Assembly: GCA_047495785.1 (NCBI GenBank)
Contig: JBLDXI010000074.1
Span: 1,178,001 to 1,242,000 of the forward strand
Origin: Lepidodermella squamata
Lineage: Eukaryota; Animalia; Gastrotricha
Length of the DNA: 64,000 nt
Reading direction: 5' to 3'
The notes under the pieces were generated by a model, which did no database searches, was not told the origin of the DNA, and saw only the letters and a list, made by a program, of their open reading frames with translations. The position numbers were made by a program, and so were the translations under genes. Below are positions 4,081-64,000 of the stretch, one piece after another (the first letter of the stretch is position 1; each line of letters opens with the position of its first letter).

Positions 4081-4617
4081 ATGAACAAGTTCCTCGTTAG
4101 CGCCGTCGTTGTGGTAAGCATTTTACTGATTCTTTGTAAATGCTTACATTCGTTTCATTGCGTTTTACAGGCCGCTTTTATCGTTGTGGTATCGTCTGCT
4201 GCGGCCCCCGCGAAGGCCCCGGCTGCCGCGGCTGCCAAACCAAAGACTCCCAATACATCCGCGCAGAAGTCTCAGAAGTCTGCTCAAAAGAAGCCGAACC
4301 AGACCGACGCTCAGCGGAAAGCTTTCGTCAAGAATGTTGGCGGTGCCGCGAAGAGGAGTCAAGCTGCCTTTGTCAAGAAGATCCAAGCCATGATCAAGGC
4401 CAAATCGCTGCGCAAGTTCGTCGGGAGGTACTACTCGGGCAATGCGGCTGCGATCACCAACGGGATTACTAAGATAGCCAAGGATGAGAAGAAGCTTAAG
4501 TCTTTCGTCGCTGTGCTCGCCAAGAACCCCGAATTGATTGCCAAAAAACTTGCCGCAGTCAAGCCTCACGTGAAGCCAAACGCTAACAGCAAGGCTCCAG
4601 CAGCCAAGAAGCCGTGA
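4081..4617 (+). CDS. Secreted Lys/Ala-rich cationic helical protein (family member 1)
   Basis: Exons 4081-4113 and 4171-4617. The 57-nt in-frame intron is confirmed by frame-breaking introns at the same site in the paralogues. Signal MNKFLVSAVVV|AAFIVVVSSA. Mature region has no Cys and contains QRKAFVK..RYYSGN..IAKDEKKLKSFVAVLAKNP. Confidence 0.9.
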   Translation: MNKFLVSAVVVVSILLILCKCLHSFHCVLQAAFIVVVSSAAAPAKAPAAAAAKPKTPNTSAQKSQKSAQKKPNQTDAQRKAFVKNVGGAAKRSQAAFVKKIQAMIKAKSLRKFVGRYYSGNAAAITNGITKIAKDEKKLKSFVAVLAKNPELIAKKLAAVKPHVKPNANSKAPAAKKP

Positions 4618-4877
4618 GTAGCTGCTGCTGGCCGTGAGTTGCAAACATCTTGCGAGCATCTATCATTTTAACAGCATACTTGGCTTTAACCTGATACTCA
4701 TTTCGTGGAAGATTGCCCAATTTATAGAGGCTAGTGAAACGTTTTGAAGACGCGTAATTTATATTGCTGTTTATCTATTGCATTGTTTGAGGTGTGGGTC
4801 GATTGGTGATATCTCATTAAAATGTGTGGTTGTTCTGGCATCACTCGAATGTTTTTAGCTTTAATCCCGCGCTAATA

Positions 4878-5270
4878 CCGTCATTTGGGGCAAAATGAAC
4901 CTTTGGGGCTAATTGGCCAAAAATTGAGGTTTTCACATTTTTATCAAATTATTTGGCTCGAAAAATACCAGGCCAAACTTTAAAAAGATTTACGGGGACG
5001 ATTATATCAACAAGCCCCTACAAACCTGCAAATTTTCAGCCAGGTATGTCCCGAAATGAGGTCACAGCATGTTGTCGCACAGAGGCGCAAATCTAATCCA
5101 ATGAGCGACGGTTCGATTCCTCATAAAGTACCATTTTGTTTTCTCCGCGTTTAATTTTTTTAATTGTTTTGTTAATTTCCCATTCAAATTATTCCACTAG
5201 CACCACGTATCCCGGGCAATTTTTTGTTCGGGTCATTTTTTCCCCGTGGCCATTTTGCCCCAATTTACGG
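4878..5270. mobile_element. Tc1/mariner-pogo-type MITE
   Basis: TIRs CCGTcATTTGGGGCAAAATG / CATTTTGCCCCAATTTACGG, flanked by TA on both sides. Subterminal repeats; no ORF. Confidence 0.8.
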
Positions 5271-6784
5271 TAGTTGACGGCGCAGAGATCACACAACATT
5301 TAGTTATCTGCGGCCCGGTCATAGGGCTCAGTCATGAGTCGGATCTAGGCGAGCTTAATGCCAAGTTCATCCTGTCTATTCCTCCAAGCATAGAGCGAAG
5401 TAGGACCGCGGAACTGGTAGGGATAACAAAAATCGCAGTAAGGGTCCCCCTTTGGTCCTTGAATGGGCTCACCGTACGGACCGATGGAACTGGTAGGGAT
5501 GATCCATACCATCCCTGGCGGTACTTCGCTCTCTGCCTCCAAGATTTTCATGCATCGTGATCCTTGATGCGCCTATGCTAATCAAATAACATTGCCCAGC
5601 TATTTAAAGCAATTTTTTTCAAATAGAGATACAAATTCCGTGGAATCACAACCTAATAAAACATTCAATCATACCAATCAATCGAGAAAAAAGATAGGCA
5701 TTTTCCGAATCATTAATAAATTTCAATATTTTCTTTACTACGATCTGTTGCGAATCTTTCTGAATCGGCAATGTTTATTGCCATTCACTTTTGAAGGCAT
5801 AACATGTTCTCATTTTTGCGGTTTTCGCCATGTGGCCACTGTGCCACCGGGTGTCGTTATTAATGAACACACATTCACTGATGACAAAAAAACCCTCACC
5901 TTTCGACAGTGTCGTAATAGATGAAATATAACGACATGTCCTTGTATAAAAAACATATAACGACATGTCTAGTGAAGCGCGTTAATACGATAAAATTCCG
6001 GTGGTGTAGCTAATTATCCGGCACTTAGTTGCGGCTGATGAAATCGGTGATGAATTCTCGGCGCCGCCCTTTAATTTCCGCACTCAATATCGTCTCTTCC
6101 AGCACTTTTTAGAGACAAAGAAGTGGAGATATGTTGAACGATGTTGAAACCTACTTTTCAATATTTATGCAAATGAGATTTCCCGCTCTTCAACCTCTCA
6201 AAAGGCGTGCGACATCGTCGCGAAACGCGAAACGCACGCATTTTGCTTGAGAACTTTTGCAAATTTTATCACTTATCATGATCATACATCGTTTTTTGAT
6301 TCATCGTAGGTATTGTGTCAATTTCCCTGTTTGTCCCCAATTTTTTGAAATAAAGTATGTATTGATTTGCCTGGATCCTATAAATAACTGTGTTAGTTTA
6401 TTTTAAATCCTGTTTTCGGCTATGTCTCTGTGAATTCGTGAATGCTGGCGTCTGGCCTGGAAGTCATCGCGCGTCACCTGTGTCAATTCAGCACATTGTT
6501 GGCATTTGTTTTCAACCTTGAGACACGCGTCTCGCCAAGTCTTGCAGAATGAGTGACTTCGCGAGTGTCCCGAAAACTGAATAAATTAAGCATTACCGGA
6601 ATTCCAAATATGTTGTTGGTTTCGTTAGAAAGTAGAGTTAAAGTGGCCACTTGATTTAAAATGGCGGGTATAATTGAAATGGTCTCACATGCTTTTATTT
6701 ATAAAATCTAAATTGTTTGAAACTATAATATTAATTATCAAGGCTAATTGTAATTAGAAACAAGAAATAGCATCACGGCTCTTG

Positions 6785-7064
6785 TTAAAGTCTATCACTT
6801 GTCGGCCTTCCGAAGTACTCTTCGCGATCAATCGATCTCGCAGTGCTCAGAATCCTGGGATAATCAGTGCGATAGTTCGCTATCGTCTCAAAGTTTTCTT
6901 CAGTCGAATGAAGGTCATCGTCGCTAAAAGGTTGGTTTTCTTGTGCTGTATCAGCTGATACCGAAGAAATCTGTTAAAATATGATTAAAATATGATATCA
7001 TTAACACGAGCATAAATTCTAAACTAACCAATGCAGCAATGACGATGAGAAGTAGATAGTTCAT
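6785..7064 (-). CDS. Small secreted peptide precursor, 73 aa (HSTEE family, copy A)
   Basis: Exons 7064-7029 and 6970-6785 (58-nt intron). MNYLLLIVIAAL|ISSVSADTAQENQPFSDDDLHSTEENFETIANYRTDYPRILSTARSIDREEYFGRPTSDRL*. Clear paralogue of the 7745 gene. Absent from the ORF track. Confidence 0.8.
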
Positions 7065-7220
7065 CTTTTGACGAGTTTTCCGTGAAAAATTGTGTTATTG
7101 CAATATGCGATTGTAGTCGAACTAATGCATCCGATCTCGCAGTCTTATTATTAAATAGGCGCTATCACCTGCTCTTACGAGTTCACGCAGAGTAGGGACC
7201 GGCGCGGTGTTATACGCTCT

Positions 7221-7590
7221 TGACGTCATTACATGTGGATTGTGGTCCTTCTTGTTCCTTCATATGAAGCTGTCAGATGTATTTCAAGGCGCATGTCAAG
7301 ACTATGACGTCATCGACCTTGTGTTTGCCCATTGCGTCAAAAATTAAATACTAATACATTAAATAATACCAACGAAAAATGATTCATAATGATGCGAGAA
7401 AACGGAGGTGGAAATTAAAGCACCCAAGGCTTGACGTACGTAACGAACGATATGTCCCAAACAAAGGCTTCAAGAATTCCGATGATGCCATCAGATCAGA
7501 TCAGATTAGATACTGGCAACGTGACCTCCTCAAGCGTCATTGTAGTGCAAATGAAATGGACAACAGTCAGTTTTGCAAGAAGTGACGTCA
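7221..7590. promoter_or_regulatory. Bidirectional promoter with three perfect CRE palindromes
   Basis: TGACGTCA at 7221-7228, 7305-7312 and 7583-7590, between the head-to-head genes 7064(-) and 7745(+). Confidence 0.6.
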
Positions 7591-7744
7591 TTGCTGCATC
7601 ATTGGAAATTGATGCCCACGATTGTTGAGCATCAATTTCTTTGATATATCTACTGAATGACTGGGACACACGCAGTGCATAGTTTAACGAAAACTGAATA
7701 TTACAATCATAAGGCATCAGACTTCACGGCAAACTCATCACGAA

Positions 7745-8039
7745 ATGAAAAGCTTAACCCCCGTCATTATTTTGGTTCGTTCAATAGTTTATCTTGAATA
7801 CTGGCAGCTTTGACTGATTTGGTATATTTTCTTGACAGATGTTCACTGTAGCATCAGAGGCAGCATTGATAATGCGACCTTTCAGCAACATCCGTCATTC
7901 CACGGAGGAAGATTTCGAGAGGCTACCCGATTATCGCACGAACTCGCCTAGCATCCTGAGCACATCGACGCAGATGGGTCGCGAGGAGGACTTCGAAAGG
8001 CCAGCATGGGAGATACTGCCACATCGCCAGTATATTTAA
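7745..8039 (+). CDS. Small secreted peptide precursor, 76 aa (HSTEE family, copy B)
   Basis: Exons 7745-7774 and 7839-8039. MKSLTPVIIL|MFTVASEAALIMRPFSNIRHSTEEDFERLPDYRTNSPSILSTSTQMGREEDFERPAWEILPHRQYI*. AATAAA at about 8104. Confidence 0.8.
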
Positions 8040-10780
8040 ATTTCCATATACTTTTTCTATACCTAGGGGATTTAGTTTATTTGAAATAATTTATTTTTAA
8101 CCAAATAAAAGCGACACGCGTGACTTCGCCGCTTTTCTCATAGAAATTGACACCCCCTTAATCTCGGATTTCTTTCAAAGCAGGCTATCATTTTTTGTGG
8201 AATAACGGAGTGACCAGTCGCCAGCTTACCAACCATCCCCGCCTTAAATCCTAGCTCCTAGCTAGTATATTTCACGTCACGACTGTAATATGGATCCAAT
8301 CTAACAATCTAGCAATCTGATCCAGCCAATTGTTCAAACTAAATCTCGCCAGCGGAAGGATCGCTTTCAGGTGTATGGATAAGAATTCTCCTCCAGTAAA
8401 TATTGTATAAGACATTGATTCCCCACTTTGATTCCGGACGCTTTGTATACGCTTTAACACAGCCATACCGAAAAATGGCTGCAATATTAATATGCAGAAT
8501 TGGCTCTGAGTTGTTTCTCACGCGCGGTGTGTTATTGTTTACAAATTACTGGCTATATGCCAGTCATGGAAACCTGTTTTCCACTGGCCGTTTTTTGTTC
8601 GCAACAATTGAGTGCACGCACGGAATAAGTTGATGACCGTAATTTCTTGCATTTTGAATTGCGTAGTTTATCAGCGCTGCGCAATCTTCGACGGCGGCGT
8701 CGTGAAGATCGACACTCGAGGAAAAAACACGCCGCACGTGTCGAGGTTCCTATACTAATTTTCGGCTCAACAAGTTTTTTTCTCGGTTGGTGCTAAACAA
8801 ACTTTTATTGCCTGTGTCGGGCAGTAAAAGCTGACTGGCAATTTAATTCCTATTTTCACTGCCATTTCTTCAAAATGAATCTCTTGAATTACCTGCATCT
8901 CTAAAAAATGTTCAAGTTTAGTTATGAGATTAGCTCAGCCCCAGAGAATATTTGTGTAATATCATTTCTCGGTTCGGTTCATTACAGTTTCTAAAGTTTC
9001 CGCATCGCAAACTGACTTGAATTAAGAAGAGCCTCCGAATTTGTTTATAGAACTTATATAACTTATGACGACCCAAGATCATTACCATCTCAATTTCTCT
9101 GATCTTGAGTAAGGACTGATTACGATTACGGAGGTGATTTTCTGGTCATTTTAGAAGCATTTTTAAACAAGTTCTACATGGAACGATTACTTGACGATTA
9201 CTCTTCTTTAACTTCTTTTTCTGAGTTTTCTCCCGCCCGATCACTTTTTCTTCATCAACCTTGAAACGCAAATGCCTCGAATAAGCTGTCTAAGCAGATT
9301 CAGAATTACGAGATTAACCTTTAAATATGCTTAGTTAATTCCTTTCGTTAATTTTGCTCGTAAACGATACCGTGGCGATTCATAAGCAGATCTCAAACGA
9401 AAGAATAATCTCAGCTTTCATCCAATAAATTATCGGTTAAGCCAATTAAATCGCGTTTCAAAACGCATAGTCTGGCCACTTGACACTTGTATAACAAAGG
9501 GAAGAAAAAAATACGCAGCTCGTGCCTACGATTATCATTAAATTTCATCCCGTGGCGACATGTATTTGTCGACCAGGTGTGAGGCGGCTTTTATTACTGC
9601 GTGGGGCTATAGCGCGCTGGGCTCAGGCGATAACTCGAGTTTTTTGTTGTGTTTCTGAGGCTTGAGGCGGCACGCGTGGCCGATTATTAGCAATAAATAA
9701 TAACATAAAAACTTAACTTTTTTTCCTACCATGCGCAAACTCTCACCTACGGGTTGTAAAGATTGGTTTTAGATTCTGCGTTTAGAAAAGTTTTCACGCA
9801 CGTGAAATTGGTGAGTTCATCAGCGTCATTTTTTTTCATATGCTCACACTCTGTCGTTCACTGTCATTTCGAGCAGCAAAAAATAATCATCATCATTTTT
9901 TATTGTATAATTTTTTAACGGCTTGTTAGTGGCGCGCGCGTCAAATAAAAGTCTCCATGCCGCCGAGTCGAGTGGTTAAGAGGGATGGCTCCGTTGTTGC
10001 GCCTAAAAGGTGGTGTTTGTCAACGAGTGATAATAATAATAATAACCATGACACCACTTGCTATCATCATAACAATGCGTGACGTAAAATGATGTGTGGA
10101 TGGATGGATGTAAGTGAGTGAGTGAGTGAGTGTGGTATTCCTGTTATTATACTATGCCCCTTATGTGCGACGATTAAGGTGGCATGCTTTAAACACCCTG
10201 CATTTTCAAGGGTGTGATTTAATCCACCACGCGCGTCTCATATTAACTCGCTACTACTTCGTGTAATGGCTTTGGAAACTGATAACAGAGGTCAAATTAC
10301 GGAAAAAGCCATTAGCCTAATGGCATCACCAAGATCAGGCGTCAATCTCTATGATACCAATCAAAGCCTGATTACAGACATTGTTGAGCCCATCGAATAG
10401 TTGGATTGGATTGCCTTCATATTCTTACCGGTTTTAAGTTTCGAGCATCTCACTTGTGATACCTTCGATCTTCAGTCTGTTCATCCCATGCTCAGTATAA
10501 TCGTAGTTTCTAGCTCAATATAATCGTATGAATTCCTTATTTGTTACCTCTTCGCCATACCGTTTCCCTGGCACTTCCTTTTCTACGGGTACTAGTTGGT
10601 TTCATCTACTACATCCTGTTTTAGCTTCTCACAGAGAAGCTTGAGGTCATAAATGTAAGGCACTTCGATTCATTCGTGTATCAGAACATGTGCCTTTATG
10701 CCAAACTCTTCTTCTTAGTGACTGCAAAGTGAATTTAATACTGATTTTAGGAATTTTAGGTGGTAAAAGACATTTTCGCC

Positions 10781-12246
10781 ATGTCGCTATACACGACGCT
10801 CGCCCTGGCGATGCTTGTTGGCCTGGCAGCCGCTGCGGACCCAGCCTGCGACGGCATCCGCCCGTCTAGCCGTCAGCAGTTCTGCTGCGGTGGCATCATC
10901 TATTTTGACCCCAATTTCTTGTACACATGCTGCGACGGCAAAGTCTGCGAAGTCGACCCAGGAAGCGTAAGTCGTAACACCAATTAGCTCCATAATGCTA
11001 TGAAAGCTTGCATCCAGTTACTTCAATTAGGAAAAATATAATTGTTCAGAAAGTGAAACTTGCCAAATTATTGAAAATTTGTGTTAAATTGTTCTTGCAG
11101 AATGTTGTTGTCCAACCGACCCAGCCCCCGCAAACTACGCCTCCGCCACCTCGCCCGGTTCTCCCAGTCATTGTTCAGCCCCAGAACCAACAGCCAGTGC
11201 CAATTCAGGGCCAGACAGCCCCGAATGGTCAGCAGTGGTTCCCATGGAGCCCATTCATGTTCAATCCATTCAACCCATCATCTCAAGACGTAAGTTGAAG
11301 CAAAGCATGTCAATTATTGCATTTCAACCCTATTTTTGCAGAACCTCGCAATCGTTCCAAGGCCAGCTGTTACGACTACTCAGCCTCCAAGTGTCGTAAG
11401 TTTCGAGAAAAATTAGCAAATGCACGAAGCAACTATAGCAACTTGTGATTATCGTTTTCCTAATTCACTTCAAATTATAGAGAACGGTCAGTCGAAGAGC
11501 ATTAATCATATTATAAACATACATTAGTTAACACATTCAGAGTTCAGAGCTTTATAAAATTATAGCTTACTGTAGCATTTCTGTTTTTCTATCTGTTTCT
11601 CTTAACTGTAGACCTTTCCTTTTCACAAGCATGCTCCTCGTTAATTTTTATAAGTTCAACACTTTTCGTTTATCGTCTTCAAAATCATAATTTCCTTACC
11701 TTCCTTTCTTAGTTCTGCGATGGCGTCGATCTGACGCAACTGCAGAAGGTTCAACCTAGCCTGGCCTGCTGCGGCAATCAGGTCGTCTATGACACTCGCT
11801 ACTACACCTGCGGCAGCCAGGCCGGCGCCCAGCCCCAGGTCACGAGCACTCAGTCACCCAGCGCAGTCACCCTGCCGACCGCCTTCCAGCCTATCCCGTG
11901 TGACCAGAACTTGTACTACGTCGATCCGCGCATCGCCAGCTTTTACAAGTGCTGCGCCTCGACTGCCTACGACAGCCGTACTGAAACCTGCCAACAGGCC
12001 TATCGCCTCATGTACCAGCCGACCAACACTTACCGCGTCCAGCCCCTCGGTTTGTTCACTTTTTCAAAATAGGAGGGAGGGGGAAATATAATTTTTCCCA
12101 TAGCAGATTTAATTTATCTCATTTAATTTTCAATTGTTTGTTTCTTTGTAGACCCGGCCGTTGCGCCTCAGCGATCAATGCTTAGCTGCGGAGCGACCAA
12201 GTACATTTTTGCCACCCCGGATCTTGCGTCCCAGTACACGTGCTAA
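10781..12246 (+). CDS. Secreted double-Cys (galaxin-like) protein, modules A-B-C-D with Pro/Gln/Thr linkers
   Basis: Exons 10781-10966, 11101-11289, 11342-11395, 11713-12049 and 12152-12246, all GT..AG and frame-consistent. Signal MSLYTTLALAMLVGLAAA. Motifs CCGGIIYFDPNFLYTCC, LACCGNQVVYDTR and CCASTAYDSRTETC. Ends QYTC*. Confidence 0.9.
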
Positions 12247-18641: not shown

Positions 18642-19769
18642 CTCCCATTTCTGTGGCTTGTTATGTTAGTTATCGTTAATTAGTTAGCTATAGATACCCA
18701 ATGGAGTATCGCCGTCATCTATTCTTGAAAATTGTTACTTCATTTCAGTTTCAAGTAATACATTTTCAGAAAACTTAAAATACCGCTTGTTTCCTAATTG
18801 CGACACTTTAAAAACTATCCGCTAACTTCCAGAGTGTGGAGATTCTATAATTTTTCCTAGAACTTTCTATTTAGAACGGGTCTTTTCTAAAATAGTCAGT
18901 AATGATTCATTAAATTCTGAATGCGATATCTCTCGAAGCTATTAAAGTATAGTAATAGTGCATCCTATTAGCTGCTGTATTAAATTTCAAATTCTGCATT
19001 GTTGATAGGATTATTTTACTTCAACATTTACTCGAAGTCACCTCTTTAGTAATAACTGTTTGGACATCGGATACTGATTGGGAATCGGAGATGTTAAATT
19101 GGCGAAATTCCGGCAACAGGTCGCTACTATACTATTTGCTGAGTGCTGGCTATTTCGATATATTCAACCTGTTATCGCCATTTTTGTTGAAAAAAATGTG
19201 ATGAATTATTCTCTTGGTTTTACTTCCTTTGTTCATTTTCGATTATTTCGGTGCGTTGAAAATAAAGATGCACGGCAACGGGTCACGGCAGCTCGTTTTT
19301 GCTAACTGTGAAATCTTCAATATATCGAAGAATTACACAAAAGCGCGAGAGAACTTATTAAAATTCGCGAGAAAGAATTATAGAAAGGATAGACGAAGAA
19401 GCTGAATTCCTCTTTTCTCTTCAAGAGTCCAAGAACGCAAGATAGCAATTGCAGCTAATGGCAATTTTATAGCCCTTGAACCGAAGATAGTAATTTTGGA
19501 TGCAACCGCTCCGCAATTGTAAACACCGCAATATAGCGGTATAATGATATATAGAAATATGCGCTAGCACTGGCGGTCCCTTACGTCGCAACACGAACGA
19601 CGTTCAATTTAAGCAACCGCATTTGGTTATCGCAAATCAGCTCATATAGCTTCTCGAGATAACATGTTGCTCCTTATCATGACATCCCCCGGCTTATCTC
19701 ATTCCCATCGAAGTTTAGCCGAGATTAGCGAACGAGTCGAGAAAGCATTATTTGCCACGAGTCAATAAT

Positions 19770-20730
19770 ATGACTGAAGCAAACGCTAGGCCTAACTTCA
19801 ACGCTTGGGACTCGTTGGGAGAACCAGAAGATGGCAGGCCATTGGCGACTATTCGCGGCTACAACCTACCAGTAAACATTCCGATATTCTGGCCGGAGGC
19901 GTACAACTTCGAATTTGACCCTCAAGACGTGTTCATATCATCCTTCCCAAAAAGCGGCAACCACTGGCTGACTTACATTGTCTATTTATTGAAAACGCGA
20001 GATTTCGGACCTGTTCCCGAGGTCTTACAGCGGCCTTTGATCGAACTACCTGTGCCTCGGGATCAGTTGCAAAAAATCGCAGCCTTGCCTCCGCCCCGAG
20101 TTTTGGACACCCACTGCTCGCACCCAATATTGCCGAAAAATTGCTTCACTGCAAAGGTCATCTACTTGTACCGAAATCCGAAAGAAGTTGTCGTCTCAAC
20201 GTATCACCATTATAAGGCCCTAGCAGCATGGTCGTATGAGAAATCATTCGAAGGATTGGTCGATCAGTTCATTGCCGGCAAAACGTTCTGGGGACCTTAT
20301 CCCAAGCATCTGAGTGAAATGTGGAAGCTGAAAGACGAAGGCAAGCCGATACTTTTCGTCCGTTATGATGATTTGAAAAAAGACACGCGCAACATGATTC
20401 GGAAAATAGCTGAATTTATTGAAGTTTCTCTGGATGATGACTTGCTAGAGAAGATTTTGAATGCAACCTCGGTCGACGCAATGCGAGGGCGGAAAGATGT
20501 CACAGGAGCTCATTGGCAAGCGGTAATTTCCTGCTTTATTCCATTTTAACATATAATGATGTTGCTATCTCTAATTACAGAACGGTTATTGGAATCCCGA
20601 AGCTGCATTCGTGCGAAAAGGCGAAGTTGGCGGCTGGAAGGGCATGTTTTCCGACCCAGCTTTGCTTGCACGATTCGATGAGTATATCAAAAGTAACGTG
20701 CCCCTGGAAATGCAATTTAATGATGCGTAG
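19770..20730 (+). CDS. Cytosolic sulfotransferase (Sulfotransfer_1 family), about 300 aa
   Basis: Exons 19770-20522 and 20581-20730. 5'-PSB loop DVFISSFPKSGNHW, catalytic-His region PRVLDTH, 3'-PB motif YLYRNPKEVVVS, and C-terminal FVRKGEVGGWK encoded in exon 2. Confidence 0.93.
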
Positions 20731-21880: not shown

Positions 21881-22140
21881 ATGAACAGAGCTATCTATTT
21901 CGCTCTTATGATGGTTTGTATCTTATTATTTGTTATAATTAAATAGCTACCGATATGCGCACCTAAAATGAATTATACTCACAGATTTGCGTTACTGCAG
22001 CATTTGCCAAGGACGTCCTAGCTTCAGTGGTAACAATTATACAAGGGAATCCTCCGCCACCGCCACCATGTCCGAGTGGAGTAATCGCTTCAAATTGCGT
22101 TCCAGGCATCACGGACTTCTTACAAAACTACCGCGAATGA
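21881..22140 (+). CDS. Small secreted Pro-rich two-Cys peptide, 62 aa
   Basis: Exons 21881-21913 and 21985-22140. MNRAIYFALMM|ICVTAAFAKDVLASVVTIIQGNPPPPPPCPSGVIASNCVPGITDFLQNYRE*. Upstream region and exon 1 are homologous to the 23274 gene. Confidence 0.72.
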
Positions 22141-23273: not shown

Positions 23274-23514
23274 ATGAGCAGGGCTATCTTCTGTGCTCTT
23301 ATGATGGTTTGTACCTTATCAATTGTTATATAAATGTTTGCGGACATCAATTTATTTCACACAGTTGATGTGCGTTACTGCATCTACAGCGATCGAGTCC
23401 ACGAACATCACGAGTGTCACAAATCTAATATCGATAACCGTTGGGGGATTGCGCCGCCGCCGTTGGAAATTGCCGACACCAAGCTTGATGGACTTGATTC
23501 GCAAACTCAATTAA
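23274..23514 (+). CDS. Small secreted peptide precursor with RRRR site, 60 aa
   Basis: Exons 23274-23306 and 23365-23514. MSRAIFCALMM|LMCVTASTAIESTNITSVTNLISITVGGLRRRRWKLPTPSLMDLIRKLN*. AATAAA at about 23690. Confidence 0.72.
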
Positions 23515-25583: not shown

Positions 25584-26306
25584 ATGAAGCTACATTTTGT
25601 ATTTGTTCAATTTTTCTGCCTTGCAATCGGATCTTCTGCCGATGTAAGTTTTGAAAATCTCCCTATTTTGAATATTAACACAATTCAATTCTTCGTTGTT
25701 CAGGATCAGCAATTCCTCCGCTACCTCATGCCTCCAAATGCAAACCAAAGATACGCCGAAAATCCGACGGTCTACCTCGCACCAGCTCCTTACAATAACC
25801 AACCTGTTTACAAAACCCCCATTCAGTATGTCAATGAGCAGCCTGCTGCCGTCTACAACAACAACGAGCAGCCCTATGTGACTCTACGCCAAGCCATCCC
25901 GCGGCCTGCCTACACGCAAAACCAAGGCCTAATTCTCCAGCCCAATCCTAACTATCAAAACCAGCCACTCATTAACGGCGCCGCTTCGTCCTATTGGCAA
26001 AATGTGGTTAAGAACAGTAGGGTTGGATCCGCTGGACACGCTTACCAGCCCCAGGCACCGATTGTCGACCTCAGGCAATGGCAGCCGGCTGATTCTCCGG
26101 CGGAAACTCCGGATTCACCTCAATTTCCATCGCTACCTCAAGCTCCAATCATGCTACCTCCTGCAGCTGGGAACACTCTGCATTACGTGAATGATGACTT
26201 CAGACGTGCAAGTGCTGCAGCTCAGTCGAGACCTCAAAACCAGGGTGGTTACTACGCCAGGCCGCTCCAGAACCCTGGCTATCAACAATGGGGCAACAGG
26301 TGGTAG
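25584..26306 (+). CDS. Secreted Q/P/N/Y/A-rich low-complexity protein
   Basis: Exons 25584-25643 and 25704-26306 (60-nt in-frame GTAAGT..CAG intron). Signal MKLHFVFVQFFCLAIGSSA. Mature region has no Cys and is rich in Tyr, Gln and Pro. Confidence 0.8.
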   Translation: MKLHFVFVQFFCLAIGSSADVSFENLPILNINTIQFFVVQDQQFLRYLMPPNANQRYAENPTVYLAPAPYNNQPVYKTPIQYVNEQPAAVYNNNEQPYVTLRQAIPRPAYTQNQGLILQPNPNYQNQPLINGAASSYWQNVVKNSRVGSAGHAYQPQAPIVDLRQWQPADSPAETPDSPQFPSLPQAPIMLPPAAGNTLHYVNDDFRRASAAAQSRPQNQGGYYARPLQNPGYQQWGNRW

Positions 26307-30340: not shown

Positions 30341-35115
<4,775 letters not shown>

Positions 35116-51780: not shown

Positions 51781-51916
51781 ATATCTGGAAGCTTTTAGCG
51801 GATAGGTCAAATATTCGCCTTCAGGCCGCTATTCCGACCTTCGGCTGCGCCTCAGGTCTCCATAGCTGGCCTTCAGGCGAATATTTTCCGCTATCCGCTA
51901 CAAAGCTCCCAGATAT
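51781..51916. repeat. ~136-bp imperfect palindrome
   Basis: atatctggaagcttttagcggatag..aatattcgcc pairs with ggcgaatatt..ctatccgctacaaagctcccagatat. Confidence 0.7.
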
Positions 51917-52035
51917 TGTATAAAATGTAAATAATAAAATAAAGTAATAAAATAAATATATAATAAGTCCTTATTATATAAATCAGCTGAGCCTTAACCC
52001 CAGACACATCAAACCGAAAGCAATGCTCAGATATC

Positions 52036-52763
52036 TTAAGATTCGTCCGGGCTCGCCTCGCGACCAGCAGCAGCGGTGGTTGAGTGGCGACGACGTCCAC
52101 CGTAGGGAGAACGAGCTGACTCGTCTGGGCTCGCCTCGCGGCCAGCAGCAGCGGTGGTGGAGTGGCGACGACGTCCACCGTAGGGAGAACGAGCTGACTC
52201 GTCTGGGCTCGCCTCGCGGCCAGCAGCAGCGGTGGTGGAGTGGCGACGACGTCCACCGTAGGGAGAACGAGCTGACTCGTCTGGGCTCGCCTCGCGGCCA
52301 GCAGCAGCGGTGGTGGAGTGGCGACGACGTCCACCGTAGGGAGAACGAGCTGACTCGTCTGGGCTCGCCTCGCGGCCAGCAGCAGCGGTGGTAGAGTGGC
52401 GACGACGTCCACCGTAGGGAGAACGAGCTGACTCGTCTAAACTGTCTTCACGGCCAGCAGCAGCGGCGGCGGTGGTGCTGTGATTCTTGTGCTTCTTGCC
52501 GCCCTTCCCGTTTTTGCCTCCGCGAGGATGATGGTTGCCATCGGCAGCTCGAGCAGTCTCGTCCAAGTTAGCCTCTCGTCCCCCGGCGCAATGACCGTCG
52601 ACATAATGACGACAACGATAACGAGCTGCCTCTGCGTCAGCTTCGACTTCAGCCGATGCAGTCCAAACAGCGACAGATACCTAACAAAAGAAAAACTCAG
52701 TTTACGGGCTAATTATAAGATTGCACTTACACCAAAAAGGATGAGAGCAAGTAGTTTGTTCAT
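52036..52763 (-). CDS. Secreted multi-peptide precursor (prepropolypeptide) with five 26-aa tandem units
   Basis: Exons 52763-52731 and 52680-52036 (50-nt intron). MNKLLALILFG|VSVAVWTASAEVEADAEAAR-YRCRHYVDGHCAG-GREANLDETAR-AADGNHHPRGGKNGKGGKKHKNHSTTAAAAA-GREDSLDESAR-(SPYGGRRRHSTTAAA-GREASPDESAR)x5, with the last linker ending DES*. Confidence 0.88.
52041..52437. repeat. 78-bp coding tandem repeat, 5 near-identical copies
   Basis: Unit gactcgtctgggctcgcctcgcggccagcagcagcggtggtggagtggcgacgacgtccaccgtagggagaacgagct. Confidence 0.95.
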
Positions 52764-53045
52764 TCCGAAAGAATGTTTTGTAAAATGAAGTCAGCAATGA
52801 AAGCTTCTGAACGTTATTCTTACACGCCATATAATATAGGCACTAACCAGATCCGCTCCGACAACTGTGCAAACCCGGGTTCACTTGGTAAATTATTGGC
52901 ATTTGGCGATGGATAATTATATCGCGCGCGAACAACTTATTCATGTGTGGTATATTTTAATTTAAAAAGTCGTTCGTTTTGTTGACACTGCGGTCCGTTA
53001 TCCATCTAAGTACGTTAGAAATAACGGACAAGATTACTTTGCCTT

Positions 53046-53415
53046 TGACGAGAAGAATGACAAAAAGAAGATCGACGCTTTCGTCGCTGAACTCGCAAAG
53101 GACCTCGCCGAAGAGCTCGCCAAAGAAAATCGTCACAACAAGTCAAAGGCTAACACCAAGCCAACAGCCAACACCAAATCGTGGGGGGGGGGGGTAATAC
53201 GAGGATGCCGTTTAATGCCGCGAGGAGTAGTGCGATCTGTCACCATGAAAATTATAACTTAGTAGTTGGTTTTTTAATGTGATATTCTTTTCGTGGAAGA
53301 TCGCCCATTTTGTAGAGGCTGGTGAGACGTTTTGGAGTTCGTAACAGCTGTTTTATTATATAATTTAACTGGCGTGGGTTGAGTTTCATTAAAATGTGTG
53401 GATTTTCTGGCATCA
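53046..53415 (+). pseudogene. 5'-truncated relic of the Lys/Ala-rich family (C-terminus plus 3'UTR)
   Basis: aagaagatcgacgctttcgtcgctgaactcgcaaaggac matches 63875-63913. The 3'UTR motifs tcgtggaagatcgccc..tagaggct and tcattaaaatgtgtgg match 4700-4840. Confidence 0.75.
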
Positions 53416-56379: not shown

Positions 56380-57217
56380 ATGAACAAGTTCCTGACTTGC
56401 GCCGTCATCGTGGTAGGCATTTTGCTGAATCTTAGATGATTGATGCATAGCGCCGTTGCATTTTTAGGCCGCTTTCGTCGTTGTGGTATCGTCTGCCGCC
56501 CAGAAGGCTCCTGCTGCTTCGACTGGCCAGAAGCCTAAGACTGCCAACGCGGGCCACAGCGCCGCGCCAGCTAAAAAAAATCAGAATTCGCATCAAACTG
56601 AAGCTCAGCAGAAAGCTTTCGTCGCGTTTATCAAGAAGGAAGCAGCAAACCAAGCCGCATTCGCCAAGAAAATCAAGGAGCTAGTCAAGTCCAAGAAGCT
56701 GCGCGGCCTCATCCGCAAGTACTACCGTGGCAATGACGGGGCCCTCACCAAGAAGATCCAAAAGATAGCCAAGGACGACAAGAAGCTCAAGAGTTTGGTC
56801 GCTTACCTCGCCAAGAATCCTGAAGCTGCCGCCAAGAAGCTCGCGGCGGTCAAGCCCAACATTGCCACTGCTGCCCACCCGGCACCTGCTGCCGCCAAGC
56901 CAGCACCTTCTGGCCGCGCTGCCCCAGCTAGGAAGACGTCGTACCAATCTGCCGCTCAGCAGAAGGCTTTCGTTAAGTATTTCGGCGGTCTCGCGAAAAA
57001 CCAAGCCGCACTCGCCAAGAAACTTAAGACCCTCAAGACCACGCAGCTGCACGACATCGTCAAAAAGTACTACGGTGGCAATTCCAACGCTGTCACCAAG
57101 AATATCCAAGAGATAGCCAAGAACGACAAGAAGCTCAATGATTTCGTCGCTAGGCTCGCCAAGGACCCTAAAGCAGTAGCTATCGAGCTCGCAGCAGTCA
57201 AGCCCCGTTCCGGTTGA
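56380..57217 (+). CDS. Secreted Lys/Ala-rich cationic protein with two tandem domains (family member 2)
   Basis: Exons 56380-56412 and 56468-57217. The ~85-aa module (AQQKAFV..NQAA..KYY.GN...TK.IQ.IAK.DKKL...VA.LAK.P.A.A..LAAVKP) occurs twice. Promoter and 3'UTR motifs are conserved. Confidence 0.9.
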
Positions 57218-57778
57218 ACCAACCCGGTACCTGCAGCCAACCGAGCAGCTTCTGGCCGTGATTATTTAAAATCTTGCAAGCATCAATCATCATTACTATC
57301 ATAACTCTATAGTTTTGGCTTCAAAATATTATGTACTGTGTGAAAGATTGCCCTATTCGTAGAGGCTGGATGAAACGCTTTGTAGAGGAGCAAAAAGCGA
57401 TACCTTAATAGCCGGTGGTGCGAATTTCATTAAAATGTGTGGATTTTCGGCATCACATACCAACCTTTTATTGCGCGAGCCCAATGTTCAAACAATTCGG
57501 TGATTGGTGTTAAACACATGACCAATGCAGTTGGCAATGTATGGGTTCATTGAATATTAAAATCACTAAATAGTCAATTGGAGCCTTCTCTATTCGACTA
57601 TGCATTTTGCAAATTATGTATGCATTTGTTTTGTTGCGTTGGAACAGAAAGCAAATCCTCTGGTTTCTTGCTTCGACAAAGAATTTGCGAATTGAATGTA
57701 AAGATGTGATCAGATCTACGTGGCAGCTACATGTTGTTAAGATGAGGACACCTTTGAGATGAGGCTGAAGTATACTTT

Positions 57779-58171
57779 GCCGCCCGGAGATCTCCTGGTT
57801 CCCCTACTGGCCGCAAGAACCAACCGATTTCTGCTGGACAGAACGGCCACGCCGCCTCAAAGAGATTGCGCCAGACTGACGCTCAGCGGAAAGATTTTCA
57901 AGGATCAAGGATATCGGCGGTGCGGCGAAGAACGACCAAGCTGCCTTTGCCGAGTAGATCCAAGCCATGATCAAGGCCAAATCACTCCGCAAGTTTGTTA
58001 AAAGAAGTACTACTCGAGCAAAAAGGCCGGCCTCGCCATCTTAGTGATCGCTAAGATAACGACGAGGACGAGAAGATGCTGAACGCATTCGTTGGTTACC
58101 TCGCCAAGAACCCCGAATTTGTCGCCAAAAAGCTAACCACGATCAAGTGTCACAATAAGCCGACGGCATAA
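57779..58171 (+). pseudogene. Lys/Ala-rich family pseudogene
   Basis: Homologous to exon 2 of the 4081 and 63471 genes. In-frame TAG at 57955-57957, a tcaagga duplication causing a frameshift, further indels, and no exon 1. Confidence 0.85.
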
Positions 58172-59870
58172 TAGGTCTATGACCTAAGGTTAACAACAAG
58201 AGAAATAAGGCTGCGGCACCAAACCGGTCGCTGGTGATCGTGTGGAAGGCTGGTTGCCCATTTTGCCTTGATTGTCGTGGCTAGTGAAACTCCTTGAAGA
58301 CGTGCTTTTAGAATTACTAATTGATTTTATTTTAACTTAGTGAAGTATGCGGCATATTTTTTTTTAAGTTTTCAAGCTATATTTTTTGAACCGAAGCTGA
58401 TACGAAGGCATTTTTGCAAAATGAAGCTTTGCGGTTCCCGTTGCGATTGAATGCGATTAGTCAACCCATTATGGGCTAAAAAACAAAGTTTTAAGTGCCG
58501 TAAGCGTCCCTGATAGCCCAAATCTTTGCAAATCTGTGCAAGATCGTGCACGGATCTTTGATGGATCTTGGCAAGCTCAGCTAAGATCTTGCCAAGATTT
58601 GATCCCTAGGGATATGAGCTGTGTGACGCTTTCATATTCAGTTTGGGCTTCTATTCTCTTCTTGACCCAACTCACAACGCAGTGTTCAATATCCACAAAC
58701 AAAACAGAAGCTGTGAATTATCGACCGGCTGCTATTCCATGTGGGATATTATTGGTTATTGAATGCCACAAGGACAAGTTGCGTTTCCCATCGGCTGCAG
58801 CCGTTCTGGCACCCCACTGTCAGCCAGTTGTCACAGTAGGAAAAAATGATGTTAATTTGTTGATATTTTATATCTTGTATTGTACGCAGAATTTCGGAAT
58901 TGTGAGCATCCTTCACCCAACACTATAAACGATATAACGATAGAAAATTGACATTTTTTTCTAGGGGTCGCAGCCGTATACGAATTTTAGGCGAAGCATT
59001 AGTTCTGAATTGAACACTCTTTCTTACAGAGAATGTTACGCTGAATTTAATGGTGATTCTTTTATAATTACTTTCATCAAGATACTTTCACCCGCAAGAA
59101 ATATCGGAAAAGTGAAAATAGCAAAATTAGGTTCCGCTCACCGTAAATTTGGTTCCGGTGAAAGGAGGACCCAATAACTTGTTCACATGATGCGTTTTGT
59201 TGACACTATGGTCCGTTATCCATCTAAGTACGTTAGAAATAACGGACAATGACGTACGTTCGATTCACGTACATGATACATGCAATTTAATAATTATCAA
59301 CTTCAATCTTTCTATTCAGCGAGGGAATAAAACGTCGAAAGATAACTAATTTAAAAACATCGCTCGTCTGCGCAATCAGGAGATCGATCATTATTATCGG
59401 TAAATTTCGAACTCGAGACGTTTTACTATATCACCTGAATAGTGAGGCTCTTTTCTCCCATTCGGGTATTACCATTATTCGGGTTTTTCGGGGTTTTTTT
59501 CCAATTTTTCGGATATTCTGTTCTAGTTACAGTGAGCCATTCGGTAATAATATTATGGTGCTTTCACAAATGCGTCCGATGGTGAAAACTTCGGCTAGCA
59601 ACTCGCAAACTTCGGTAGATGGAAGCGAAACGTCGGAGAGCGTTATCAGTGGCTCTTCGGACGCGCGCCCGAAGTCTCTATTGTTTAGCTGCCGAAGTTG
59701 CTCATTGTCACGCATTTGAGCGCGCGCGCAAGCGAGTGGCAGGCTAGGTACCGGGGTCAGGCAAAAAAATGTCTATTTAAGCGTAAATGCTGAATTCAAC
59801 TAAATAATGAGACGTGAAATGCGATGCGGATCATAAAAATCTAAATTTCATCGAAAAATTATGTGATTAA

Positions 59871-59940
59871 CACTGTGTTGAGCGCGAGAATGTGGAGCGC
59901 GAGAATGTGACCAGCGAGAATGTGTGTGCTCAACACAGTG
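59871..59940. repeat. Mini inverted-repeat element with internal gcgagaatgtg repeats
   Basis: cactgtgttgagc .. gctcaacacagtg enclosing three copies of gcgagaatgtg. Confidence 0.6.
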
Positions 59941-60899
59941 ACCAGCGAGCGTTAAAAGAAGCGTGAAAGAAGCGTGACAGAGGATAGCATGTTATTCGGG
60001 ATGCAGGAATGTCAATTGAATGATTGGTTGATGAGGGCGCTGGCTCTATCATACGTCGAGATCTAGTCAACATGCCTCATCGATGAATCGGTAAGAATTT
60101 GCTTATTTTTACCTGATGGGCAAAATTATCAGCCGATTAATTAAATATCATTTGTCATCGAAAAAATGTGCGGGATCTTTGAGTTACCATTTGCCAAACA
60201 TTTGCATCGTAAAGACTCATAATTTGTCTAATTTGCATGCATGCCCTAAATTTCAGAATTTATTCGTTGATAGCTTTAATGAAAATTCTGCAAAATTCGG
60301 TATTTTATTTTTAAATTTCCAGGGTTACTGAAAAATTTCTCGGACTTTTCTCCCATATATTCCCGAAATTTTCATATGGATTGCCGAAGTCCGCCCCGGC
60401 ATTTTTGGCAGGAACAATCTGATGAATCCAGATTAACTTCACTTAAGTTGAATATACCGATAATTCCCGATTAATTCCGATCGAGCTTTAGTCGTGGTTT
60501 CCTCGCAGTGAACTTATTTGTTTCCCCGGTAAATCGGTGAGAATAGGTACTGAAGTCTATAATGCGCCAAAATGAGGATAATGCATTATTCAGAATTTAT
60601 AAATTGAGAAATTGCCGCTGTCTTAGATAGGAATTTTCACATTTTTCCGCCGGCCCAAAAATTGTATCTAACCGGTATCAAAAATTCGTGGACGAAGGCA
60701 TCCCATTCCGCTTGCTTCGTTACCCATGTTCGTTACATTGCAGCCATTTAATCTATGGCTGCAATGATGTGCGCATTGAGCGTGACGGCGTGATTTCACG
60801 ATAGACGGCTCCAATCCATGACCGCAATCGTGTCGCAGCATCATTATATAATTTGCATGCATGCCCTAAATTTCTTAATTTATTTCAGAAAAATGGGGA

Positions 60900-61264
60900 A
60901 AAGTAGGCTTCTATTCAAGACTAGGCTTCTATTTGAGATAGGCTTGTGCAACGGAGACCTGACTTTACTTTCTGTCTTTCAATCTCAAAACTCATTATTA
61001 GTTATTAGCTAGGTCGTCTAATAGCTGAAAATTAGGAATAATAAGGAATGCTTTAACTAAAATCATCGTAAATCGCAGATTATTACATATCTTCACGAAT
61101 TTTTCGGTTTTAAATAGCGTTCAGCGCAACAGAGCACACGCGCCGTAGTAGCATAGGCTACTATTCGAGATAAGACTATGCATCGTCGAATTTCAATTTA
61201 CCTAGGCTTCTAATCGAGACAGGCTTCTAAACGAGTGGGGGCTTATATTTCGGTAACTACGGTA
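60900..61264. mobile_element. Right end of a pogo-type MITE
   Basis: Repeated aggcttcta(t/a)tcgaga motifs ending in ..TACGGTA. Related to the terminus at 26701. Confidence 0.55.
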
Positions 61265-61745
61265 TATTTTTGGAAAAAAAATTTGAAATTGTAATGAGAA
61301 CTACGAAATCAGACGACGTAACCCCATTTTAAATGTTGAAAAGAGGGTGCAAATTATCTGCTGAAATTTGGCAGGCAATGACCTTCGAATCATAATACCG
61401 ATTTAGGAACGCGAAGGAAATTGCTATTAATGAGTCAAGAAATCGGAGGGCGGCCTTCGTCAAAGAATTGAACCTCGATTCAAGGCATCTATTCCTGTTT
61501 ATAGCGCGGCATTGAATTTTAAGAAACACCTTGGAATCCTAGAATCGTCCTTATTCAAGTCAACACACCTTTCGCCATTTGCTGGAAAATATAGAAAATA
61601 CACCAAACCCTATTTTTTACTTGCTACCGGTCAAATAAAAATTAAGTCTATTTTCTTCGATGCATCAATCAAAAAGGGAATCGGCTGATATTTTTGCCAA
61701 TCAGATGAAAGAGGAATAAGAAAATTATTACCGATGGCTGGGACA

Positions 61746-62410
61746 CAGCGCTGAAAGTAGTGCCAGGTACGCAAGGGACGCCGAGTATAGCGCCAGGTAC
61801 GCGTACCTGGCAGGTTTGGTCTCCAGTTGTACCTGCCAGGTACGCTGAAATCCCTGGCGGGTTAGGGGTTTCTTGGTGCGAAATTCCCTTTTTAGTGGTT
61901 TCCGTTACTTTTTCAATCGAAAATCTTCACTTGGACAGATGAATTCTCAAAAATTTCTCGCTTCGCTCGCATACCATCATAATTCTTATATTAAACTGTA
62001 TTCGATCGTCGCAAAATCTGGTTGTCTTAGCCCAGCACGAAAACTTTTTCGATAATCGATATTGCATATAAGGAATCCTAGTAAGTTTTACAGTGATTTG
62101 AGTGATTCCATAAGCAACAATACCATAAGAGCCTCCTGCAATTAGCGTGTACCATTCGAAAATGCGATCCAGGTCAGCTAACATTTGAAGCATTTTTTGC
62201 AAACTGAGCTCAAAATGTAAGATAAAAATAGCGTCAGCTAAAGCTCGCTACGCTCGCCTGTAATACGAAAGAGAGATTGGCATAAAACGCAGAAATATGG
62301 TAGCCAAATCATAAGTGGAAGGTTCGCGAGCGAGCGTAGCGAGCGAGCGCAATTTTTTTTGCTCAGTTACATGCGTACCTGGCAGGTCAAATGTCCTACT
62401 TTCAGCGCTG
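61746..62410. mobile_element. hAT-type MITE (665 bp)
   Basis: 15-bp TIR CAGCGCTGAAAGTAG / CTACTTTCAGCGCTG. 8-bp TSD CTGGGACA at 61738-61745 and 62411-62418. Subterminal ccaggtacgc repeats. Confidence 0.9.
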
Positions 62411-63470
62411 CTGGGACATGCTGACTGTATCTTGACGCTTGATATGGGAGCCAGTTCACTCGTCAACCTGTTATTCGATTAGCAATCCTTGTTACCCGCC
62501 TCACGCCTCAAGTTGCTAAGGCTGGTGGTGGTGCCGGTTGTGGTCGACGCTGGTGTCGCTTTGTCACGCTCGCCGTGTTGACGCATACTACGATGGCTAC
62601 GCTCGCTGGTCATGGTGCTGAGCGCGAGAATGTCCCACTTTCCAATTGACTCGACAATTTGAAAAATCATCTGAAAATAAGAAAATAGCTTTAATGACTT
62701 GGCTTTTTCGCGATGTAATGTGAAGGTGGAGGCCCATACGAAAATTTTCATAAATATCTCGCAAAGAAGCTGGAATTTCGTTCAACGTTGTGGACATTGT
62801 AAAATTTGAGACCACTCATGTTAGCCGAAAAATTATGATCGGTCTTTTATTCAATTTTCGTCGATCATAATTCATCACTTGAATGGGAATATCAATTGTT
62901 AGGTAACTTGTGCAAATGAAAGTCAACCGATCAAACCAAAATACCCGGAAAAAAATATTCATGGGTCTGAATTATTTAATTGCGGCGAGATTATTTTTTC
63001 GACGTTCATCAATTCTTAAAAAACGACAAAATATTAGAAATGCTGTGTCATTGCTAGTCGCGGCTGGTAACTTGCTCGAATAGCTCAAATTCAGGTTCGA
63101 TTATCGTTAAATCTGTTCATCAGTGTTTTGACCTGCTTGTTCTCGTTTCGACATTGAAATTTGCAGAATTAATTTTACGAAATAAATTGGGCGCATCGGA
63201 TGTGTCCCCTAACCCATTTCCATCATGTTATCTTCCTACGTCATTTCATTTGCGTCATTAGAACGCCTAAAACCATATCGAATGCACCGAAAACGCAAAA
63301 TACACCGTAGCCCAGACGCGGCTGATCCAACAATTGGAAGGTGCCAACTCATTCACGCGATTTTCACGTGAAAATTCACGTAATGGAGGCTATAAAATGC
63401 AGGTTTTTCTACTGAATTTTCACTTTCAACTTCTCTCTCCCATCAACATTTTATTTTCTCTCCTTAGAAA

Positions 63471-64000
63471 ATGAACAAGTTCCTCGTTGGCACCGTCGTT
63501 TTGGTAAGCATTGTGTCTTTACTTTTGATGCGTTCTAATGTATTTTGCAGGCCGCTTGCATCGCCGTTGTGTCGTCTGCCGCACGCGCTGCGAAGGCCCC
63601 ATCTGCCGCCGTTGGCAAACCGAAGTCTCCCAGTACTTCCGCCCAGAAGCCCCACGCTGCCTCGGGTGTTCAAAAGAAGCTGCATCAGAGCAAAGCTCAG
63701 CGGAAAGCTTTCGTCAAGGATGTCGGCGGTGCCGCGAAGAGCAACCAAGCTGCCTTTGCCAAGAAGATCCAAGCCATGATCAAGGCCAAATCGCTGCGCA
63801 AGTTCGTCGGGAGGTACTACTCGGGCAATGCGGCTGCGATCACCAACGGGATTACTAAGATCGCTAAGGACGAGAAGAAGTTGAAGGCTTTCGTCGCTAA
63901 ACTCGCAAAGGACCCCAAATCGGTCGCCAAAAAGCTGACCAAGATCAAGCGAGCCAATAAGACGAAGGGCAACGCCAAGCCAAAGGCATCGACTGCCAAG
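63471..64000 (+). CDS. Secreted Lys/Ala-rich cationic protein (family member 3), running off the window end
   Basis: Exons 63471-63503 and 63551 to beyond 64000 (47-nt intron). MNKFLVGTVVL|AACIAVVSSA..QRKAFVKDVGGAAKSNQAAFAKKIQAMIKAKSLRKFVGRYYSGN. TATA at 63391. Confidence 0.9.

Follow-up and report, generated by a model that had tools for sequence, protein, structure and literature searches.

How do genes whose mature products cannot be aligned come to share the same break in their signal peptides? The question is raised by a 64,000-nucleotide (nt) stretch of animal DNA (the window; G000:C74:1178001-1242000; G+C ~42%), taken from an assembly of 121 Mb in 151 contigs, in which eight genes for small, presumably secreted proteins each begin with a coding exon of 10-12 codons that ends inside the signal peptide. 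A preliminary description had assigned these genes to four unrelated families and had proposed either one ancient superfamily or a reusable promoter-plus-signal cassette, by analogy with conotoxin and frog-skin peptide precursors. On the sequence evidence, the best reading is that the window holds eight local representatives of a genome-wide class comprising dozens to ~100 two-exon genes for small secreted proteins. We give a probability of roughly 0.55 to the view that this class radiated from one or a few ancestral two-exon genes and is now recognisable mainly by its gene structure.

Gene models were built by using a script that enumerates each ATG, in-frame GT donor, AG acceptor and open frame. 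All eight models of the preliminary description were reproduced by this script where it had placed them, with the refinement that B and D1 lie on the minus strand. By sequence, the eight genes fall into four families: A (three genes), B (one gene), C (two genes) and D (two genes). In each of them the first coding exon has 10-12 codons (11 in six of the eight) and is followed by a phase-0 intron of 47-71 nt and a single second exon, in which the gene ends and which carries the entire mature protein, as had been claimed. The term signal-peptide mini-exon holds for part of the structure: the 10-12 codons are real, but what they encode (Met, then one or two polar and about eight hydrophobic residues) is no more than the first half of the signal peptide. 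Exon 2 encodes the remainder of the hydrophobic core together with a small-x-small cleavage site (SSAAA, TASA, AFA, VSA or SEA), and 6-12 more hydrophobic or small residues follow the junction before the predicted cleavage site. The split falls as MNKFLVSAVVV / AAFIVVVSSAAA in A1, MNKLLALILFG / VSVAVWTASA in B, MNRAIYFALMM / ICVTAAFA in C1 and MNYLLLIVIAAL / ISSVSA in D1.

Four properties make the predicted introns credible. Intron lengths differ between paralogues by non-multiples of three, while close paralogues share 81-93% identity in exon 1. The G+C fraction is 0.22-0.40 in the introns vs 0.44-0.64 in exon 2 across the eight genes, and the unspliced reading halts after 16-37 residues in six of the eight, the exceptions being A1 and A3 (the latter, read in another frame, runs for 102 residues). 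An ABCC1-like transporter gene in the window has two introns mapped by homology, each ~55 nt long, so the introns of the mini-exon genes are of ordinary size for this genome. An identical scan of the reversed window returned no candidate with a first exon of 30-36 nt. The ratio of nonsynonymous to synonymous substitution rates (dN/dS) of the mature parts was 0.37-0.63 in family A, 0.19-0.26 in family D and near 0.9 for the pair C1/C2; on these estimates purifying selection acts on the mature proteins of families A and D, which argues that the A and D proteins are real. Among the modelled A copies, A1 alone has an intron that keeps the frame and lacks stop codons, and retention of this intron (4114-4170, +) would insert 19 residues into the signal peptide and would not truncate the protein.

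The four families differ in what follows the signal peptide. A1, A2 and A3 are plain paralogues, promoter included, with one or two units of a basic, Ala/Lys-rich domain of ~100 residues. B is a tandem-repeat precursor in which each unit contains Gly followed by Arg-Arg-Arg, C1 and C2 are a diverged pair, and D1 and D2 are divergently transcribed. The D pair is duplicated as a unit on contig C16 (258972-259013, -, and 259617-259652, +; locus L017), where a third D member and an adjoining fourth mini-exon keep first exons of 12 and 10 codons. Profile comparisons with hhalign detected no similarity between the mature parts of the four families, and Pfam held no family for A, B, C, D or the product of an A-type locus on contig C42 (L009, see below). 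A word-index protein search returned nothing for A exon 2 or the D alignment, the window's own proteins included; since even the self-matches were missing, the A and D genes are unannotated in the collection searched. From these null profile, Pfam and word-index results, the four families are by sequence unrelated, as the preliminary description had them. Immediately upstream of gene B, at 53020-53200 (+), lies an orphan 3' fragment of an A-type gene (...KKIDAFVAELAKDLAEELAKENRHNKSKANTKPTANTK) that ends in a G run; having neither promoter nor exon 1, it probably represents a partial duplicate that is no longer functional.

To count the layout genome-wide, patterns describing exon 1 and the donor were searched against the whole 121-Mb assembly, every pattern being paired with a reversed-pattern control. 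The pattern ATGAAYAARYTN + N{12,30} + GTRRGY, which requires a Met-Asn-Lys-Leu/Phe start, gave 45 matches vs 29 in the control. Exactly 11 codons (33 nt) were found in 24 of the 45, on 12 contigs, and all 24 of these exons are hydrophobic; at the remaining lengths the matches are mostly stop-containing or non-hydrophobic. A broader pattern, ATGAA followed by a gap, six codons with a second-position pyrimidine (NYN) and GTRRGY, gave 337 matches vs 196 in the control over exon lengths of 27-54 nt; family A escapes the pyrimidine filter. For exon-1 lengths of 27, 28, 29 and so on to 39 nt, the GTRRGY matches numbered 12, 7, 5, 26, 7, 14, 48, 11, 7, 13, 4, 10 and 19, against controls of ~3-8 per length. 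Counted against expectation in this way, as the preliminary description had proposed, the layout shows a sharp phase-0 excess at 33 nt (48 vs 3 in the control), with smaller in-phase peaks at 27, 30, 36 and 39 nt; five of the 14 matches at 32 nt are one repeated element. The GTTNGT donor, the class used by families C and D, samples an independent set of genes, and the first 100 of its 109 matches were distributed over the same lengths as 9, 4, 2, 6, 3, 7, 17, 11, 6, 12, 7, 6 and 10 (control ~4.6 per length), so that the mode among them is again 33 nt. A pattern reaching across the intron (a Met-Asn-Lys/Arg mini-exon, an intron of 47-70 nt and four in-frame codons with a second-position pyrimidine) gave 34 matches vs 4 in the control.

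About 85% of the 33-nt class reads Met-Asn-(Lys/Arg/Gln/Asn) followed by eight hydrophobic residues, and the 30-nt class is mostly Met-Lys followed by eight hydrophobic residues. Because MN[KR] + 8 falls at 33 nt and MK + 8 at 30 nt, the intron appears to follow about eight core residues irrespective of how long the polar start is. Many of the genome-wide matches occur in pairs or runs 1-10 kb apart (contigs C4, C6, C9, C56 and C74), and the window itself holds its eight split-signal genes within 60 kb.

The distribution of matches over the assembly has some features of its own. About one third of all 33-nt matches lie on the window's contig, C74, between 75 kb and 1.32 Mb (~1.3 Mb, ~1% of the genome), which looks like an island of secreted-protein genes. 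Three mini-exons of this contig (MNKHLVAMLFV, MNKFLVAILLL and MNKRLVSMLLV; C74:75167-130524, at its start) have identical counterparts close to the end of another contig (C13:4646330-4706907), with their order kept and their spacing similar. The contig pairs C30/C50, C25/C26 and C23/C54 likewise carry identical matches, and all of these pairs are probably uncollapsed haplotypes or recent segmental duplications. Two repeated elements, which begin ATGAATTATTTATGCCGTCTCC (e.g. C4:69383, C7:3734662, C30:1410811) and ATGAATCATCTGACCATCTGGCGCCC (e.g. C1:3180166, C3:247527, C7:2213184), give identical matches on many contigs and are probably transposon copies.

The preliminary description had taken equal commonness of this architecture among unrelated secreted genes genome-wide as a sign against its proposals. 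The layout is indeed widespread, but it is not universal: three signal-peptide genes of the window have an unsplit signal (ATG at 1329, 10781 and 25584, all +). The last of them is an open reading frame of 240 amino acids (25584-26306, +) that has no Pfam match. The gene at 10781 encodes a small Cys-rich protein with its intron after the signal; it had been tried as a candidate fifth family, "E", and was rejected as a false positive, since its signal is read unspliced (MSLYTTLALAMLVGLAAAA then DPACDG...) and the supposed intron has a G+C content of 73%. A random sample of 200 kb of the genome contained no split-signal genes and 13 unspliced signal-like open reading frames (vs 2 in the reversed control).

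We weighed how such a layout could have spread. On the predicted gene models, the first exon consists of the 5' untranslated region (5'UTR) and the opening 9-13 codons, most often 11; Met and one or two polar or basic residues, usually Asn-Lys, precede a run of about eight hydrophobic ones, and a phase-0 intron of 47-71 nt divides the hydrophobic core of the signal peptide. Exon 2 adds what is left of the core, then the signal-peptidase site and all of the mature protein, so that splicing would build an ordinary signal peptide of 18-23 residues. The gene models, the family assignments and the genome-wide distribution are taken as shown, whereas secretion of the products and cleavage of their signals are predicted from the encoded residues. 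Under the descent reading that we prefer, the genes would have multiplied by repeated tandem and dispersed duplication, the mature parts diverging beyond recognition with intron phase and position fixed, and the variants of 27, 30, 36 and 39 nt would represent gains or losses of whole codons in exon 1. Common descent is suggested by the constancy of phase and position and by the recurrent Met-Asn-Lys start, because a one-codon-wide phase-0 peak with this start is poorly explained by a distance rule or by independent intron gains. The D pair points in the same direction, since its duplicate on C16 retains the 12 and 10 codons. The ancient superfamily of the preliminary description is still the best reading, at another scale: dozens of 11-codon mini-exon genes, mostly with Met-Asn-Lys starts and spread over many contigs, make the class far larger than four families. 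A stronger form, in which ~100 or more secreted genes are one lineage-specific radiation from a single two-exon ancestor, recognisable only by the Met-Asn-Lys 11-codon phase-0 mini-exon, is put forward tentatively.

Several considerations weigh against descent. There is no similarity between families in promoter, exon 1, intron or mature part, so the case for kinship draws only on gene structure and a three-residue start motif. Signal peptides being short and compositionally constrained, Met-Asn-Lys followed by hydrophobic residues could recur among genes that are not related, and the rule of about eight hydrophobic residues could reflect a functional or splicing constraint. The gene models and exon junctions are predicted from genomic sequence alone, the genome-wide counts cover patterns of exon 1 plus donor and, in one case, the intron and the four codons after it, and first-exon lengths were tallied by hand from the listed match coordinates. 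The counts are also inflated by expanded families (e.g. MNKI[IL]LLTLVV, with ~20 members) and by the probable uncollapsed duplicate contigs (C13/C74, C30/C50, C25/C26 and C23/C54).

The most serious alternative is that the architecture is convergent or generic: short, highly expressed secreted genes would keep or gain an intron near the 5' end, for example through intron-dependent expression or messenger RNA export, and splicing or translation constraints would set it after about eight hydrophobic codons, so that unrelated genes would arrive at one layout independently. That the layout occurs with many different signal-peptide sequences and two donor types, that the intron follows about eight hydrophobic residues for MNK and MK starts alike, and that no part of the genes shows detectable homology between families are all consistent with it. 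A distance constraint, however, would not yield strict phase-0 periodicity or the one-codon-wide peak at 33 nt, and would leave unexplained why hydrophobic MNK[LF] exons have exactly 11 codons in 24 of 24 cases; other secreted genes of the window do without such an intron, and the published excess of introns near signal peptides is of phase 1 at the cleavage site (PMC1626468), not of phase 0 in the middle of the core. We consider convergence less likely than descent, while giving it real weight.

A second alternative is exon or cassette capture, in which a promoter and mini-exon, or a promoter and the whole signal peptide, would have been copied in front of unrelated open reading frames to make new secreted peptides, a kind of join that a phase-0 boundary would permit; it corresponds to the insertion of presequences hypothesised for Plasmodium. 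The genome was searched with promoter plus exon-1 DNA family by family. The B query matched only itself, the C queries only C1 and C2, and the D2 query only itself and the C16 copy; the A query found ten A-type places on four contigs and no gene of a non-A family. Comparison of the 300 nt upstream of the ATG between families gave no meaningful shared words or motif. A 14-nt upstream match between A1 and B (AACGGACCGCAGTG) and an 11-nt match between A1 and D2 were considered as a shared cis-element and treated as chance, as they are not conserved among the A copies. Because the promoter and exon-1 DNA of each family matches its own family only and no upstream words are shared, a cassette common to the four families, as proposed in the preliminary description, is not supported by the sequences; such conservation is seen within A only.

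Inside the A group, the conserved block contains GCGGCTGATCCAACAAT, the palindrome TTCACGTGAA and TATAAAA, and continues through the 5'UTR and exon 1 into the intron and the remaining signal-peptide codons. It occurs at all ten A-type places, and at three of them (L004, L006 and L009) the A domain is absent behind it, which speaks for capture. L009 has an intact Pro/Ala-rich frame of 68 amino acids with a stop codon and a polyadenylation signal, but its product is similar to the Ala/Pro/Lys-rich linker at the start of the A proteins, and L004 and L006 look truncated or dead, with reading frames of 22-27 amino acids. Conservation among the A-type copies spans the intron and continues for ~40 nt into exon 2, so the break point lies after the signal peptide and not at the intron. 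Within family A, identities are 81-90% in exon 1, 63-77% in upstream DNA, 63-83% in the intron and 51-79% in exon 2. The signal and mature parts of the closest pair, A1/A3, have diverged equally at synonymous sites (0.425 vs 0.417), and in three more diverged A pairs the synonymous divergence of the signal part is about three-fold lower, both on only ~18 synonymous sites. Nucleotide-level conservation of the signal region across unrelated mature peptides was found inside the A group only and not over A-D. Capture is confined at most to the A group, and as an account of the class we regard it as improbable.

That the mini-exons and introns are chance runs of ATG...GT...AG upstream of open frames is very improbable: although the models come from genomic sequence and no protein in a large collection matched A or D by word-index search, paralogues keep exon 1, frame and promoter while their intron lengths drift out of multiples of three, the A and D mature parts are under purifying selection, and reversed-sequence controls yield nothing comparable.

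Arrangements of this kind are known from other organisms, among them the Drosophila glue genes. In Sgs1, Sgs3, Sgs7, Sgs8 and Eig71Ee the signal peptide is interrupted by a common phase-1 intron, and on that basis the five were grouped as one family, though some of them are unalignable (10.1101/359190). Like the genes described here, they are clustered, encode small or repeat-rich secreted proteins whose mature parts align barely or not at all, and have an intron position that shifts slightly through gains and losses of codons before it. The same combination was found here, with one intron phase and position inside the signal peptide of genes with unalignable mature parts (in all eight window genes, and as the 33-nt mode genome-wide) and with physical clustering and tandem duplication. 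The two sets differ in phase (1 in the glue genes, 0 here) and in extent: the glue genes are five in one tissue-specific set, whereas here there are dozens to ~100 genes on many contigs.

The Plasmodium falciparum exportome is the second comparison. Its genes mostly have two exons, with a first intron in phase 0 in 93%, and its authors weighed radiation from one ancestor against recombination that added the first exon or presequence (PMC1431722). As here, lineage-specific genes for secreted or exported proteins (hundreds of them in that case) lie in clusters and have two exons with a phase-0 intron. In the exportome, however, the intron comes after or late in the signal, >75% of which is encoded by exon 1, and the Plasmodium export element (PEXEL) opens exon 2. 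Here the cut is in the middle of the hydrophobic core, exon 1 encodes about half of the signal, and hydrophobic residues come first in exon 2, no PEXEL being evident in the exon-2 sequences read. The window genes accordingly share with the exportome the two exons and phase 0, and not the signal essentially contained in exon 1 or a PEXEL at the start of exon 2; the exportome belongs to a protist and these genes to an animal. Both for the Drosophila glue genes (10.1101/359190) and for the exportome of P. falciparum (PMC1431722), it was an intron shared within the signal peptide that led to the inference of common origin.

In the SSSGP/SSGP families of the Hessian fly, the promoter, untranslated regions, signal region and intron are conserved while the mature regions have diversified, and the first or only intron falls inside the signal-coding region or at its boundary (PMC2955719). 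Both systems consist of small secreted-protein genes in tandem clusters, without similarity between groups, but the unusual SSGP-type conservation appears much weaker here, the A1/A3 pair being less identical in the intron (63%) than in exon 2 (79%), with mature parts under purifying selection. The host is not a gall midge, as its ABCC1 is only ~41-42% identical to fly proteins. Aphid bicycle genes (PMC9168663 / 10.1101/2021.09.24.461719) and pea-aphid cassette effectors (PMC7495047) are also fast-evolving secreted families known by their exon-intron structure or the conservation of their signal-coding region rather than by mature sequence; they have many micro-exons, in contrast to the two exons and single-exon payload described here. 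More generally, the excess of eukaryotic introns near signal peptides is of phase 1 at the cleavage site (PMC1626468), a pattern from which the present introns depart, being of phase 0 and located 6-12 residues before the predicted cleavage site. What sets the present genes apart is that the intron is of phase 0, that it cuts the hydrophobic core midway, and that the mode at 11 codons is unusually sharp for an animal gene class.

Precursors of conotoxins and of dermaseptin-type frog-skin peptides, the systems invoked by the preliminary description, carry the whole signal peptide on exon 1, and this signal is conserved at the nucleotide level across a superfamily. The comparison is a loose one. 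The joining of a conserved signal region to very different mature peptides and the many gene duplications are common ground, but exon 1 here stops after residue 10-12 and holds half of the signal, and there is no nucleotide conservation across A, B, C and D.

Features of the eight genes (coding parts of exons, introns and the A1 promoter), with positions counted from the first nucleotide of the window.
Feature	Position	Strand	Description
A1 promoter + 5'UTR	3925..4080	+	Conserved blocks GCGGCTGATCCAACAAT, TTCACGTGAA and TATAAAA (-84 from ATG); from alignment of 9 A-type copies on four contigs
A1 exon 1, coding part	4081..4113	+	11 codons, MNKFLVSAVVV
A1 intron	4114..4170	+	57 nt, phase 0, GTAAGC...TTTTACAG; in frame, stop-free
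A1 exon 2	4171..4617	+	148 amino acids + stop; second half of signal and 136-residue basic Ala/Lys-rich mature protein, one A-domain unit
D1 exon 2	6785..6970	-	61 amino acids + stop
D1 intron	6971..7028	-	58 nt, phase 0, GTTAGT...TTAACAG
D1 exon 1, coding part	7029..7064	-	12 codons, MNYLLLIVIAAL
D2 exon 1, coding part	7745..7774	+	10 codons, MKSLTPVIIL; divergent from D1
D2 intron	7775..7838	+	64 nt, phase 0, GTTCGT...TTGACAG
D2 exon 2	7839..8039	+	66 amino acids + stop; AATAAA 64 nt past the stop
C1 exon 1, coding part	21881..21913	+	11 codons, MNRAIYFALMM
C1 intron	21914..21984	+	71 nt, phase 0, GTTTGT...CTCACAG
C1 exon 2	21985..22140	+	51 amino acids + stop
C2 exon 1, coding part	23274..23306	+	11 codons, MSRAIFCALMM
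C2 intron	23307..23364	+	58 nt, phase 0
C2 exon 2	23365..23514	+	49 amino acids + stop
B exon 2	52036..52680	-	214 amino acids + stop; rest of signal, then tandem units of the type ...SARSPYGGRRRHSTTAAAGREASPDE
B intron	52681..52730	-	50 nt, phase 0, GTAAGT...TTGTTAG
B exon 1, coding part	52731..52763	-	11 codons, MNKLLALILFG
A2 exon 1, coding part	56380..56412	+	11 codons, MNKFLTCAVIV
A2 intron	56413..56467	+	55 nt, phase 0, GTAGGC...TTTTTAG
A2 exon 2	56468..57217	+	249 amino acids + stop; two A-domain units
A3 exon 1, coding part	63471..63503	+	11 codons, MNKFLVGTVVL
A3 intron	63504..63550	+	47 nt, phase 0
A3 exon 2	63551..64000	+	Continues beyond the window end; full 156 amino acids read at locus L002

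Two other genes of the window were placed by homology. An ABCC1/MRP-type ABC transporter gene occupies 30380-35029 (-) as three homology blocks with introns of ~55 nt between them. The best named relatives of one of its exons are only ~42% identical and are spread over molluscs, arthropods and vertebrates, so that no close relative of the host animal is annotated; a closer relative (57%) was found only on metagenome contigs. The assembly contains no mitochondrial COX1. A cytosolic-type sulfotransferase domain (Pfam PF00685, E = 1e-45) lies in a single open frame at 19752-20549 (+).

The finding is not surprising biologically, because the same logic is established in Drosophila glue genes, gall-midge salivary proteins, aphid effectors and the malaria exportome. 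The families are orphans, and the split signal hides such genes from gene finding based simply on open reading frames or signal peptides. The structural rule (9-13 codons, usually 11, then a phase-0 intron of ~55 nt) offers a practical way of listing much of the secreted peptides and proteins of a little-sampled animal, and it allows one to ask whether the split-signal genes arose by one radiation. If a single radiation were true, gene structure would be the search key for this animal's fast-evolving, unannotated secretome, much as the two-exon, phase-0 rule is for the malaria exportome, and contig C74 would be a hot spot at which new secreted proteins arise.

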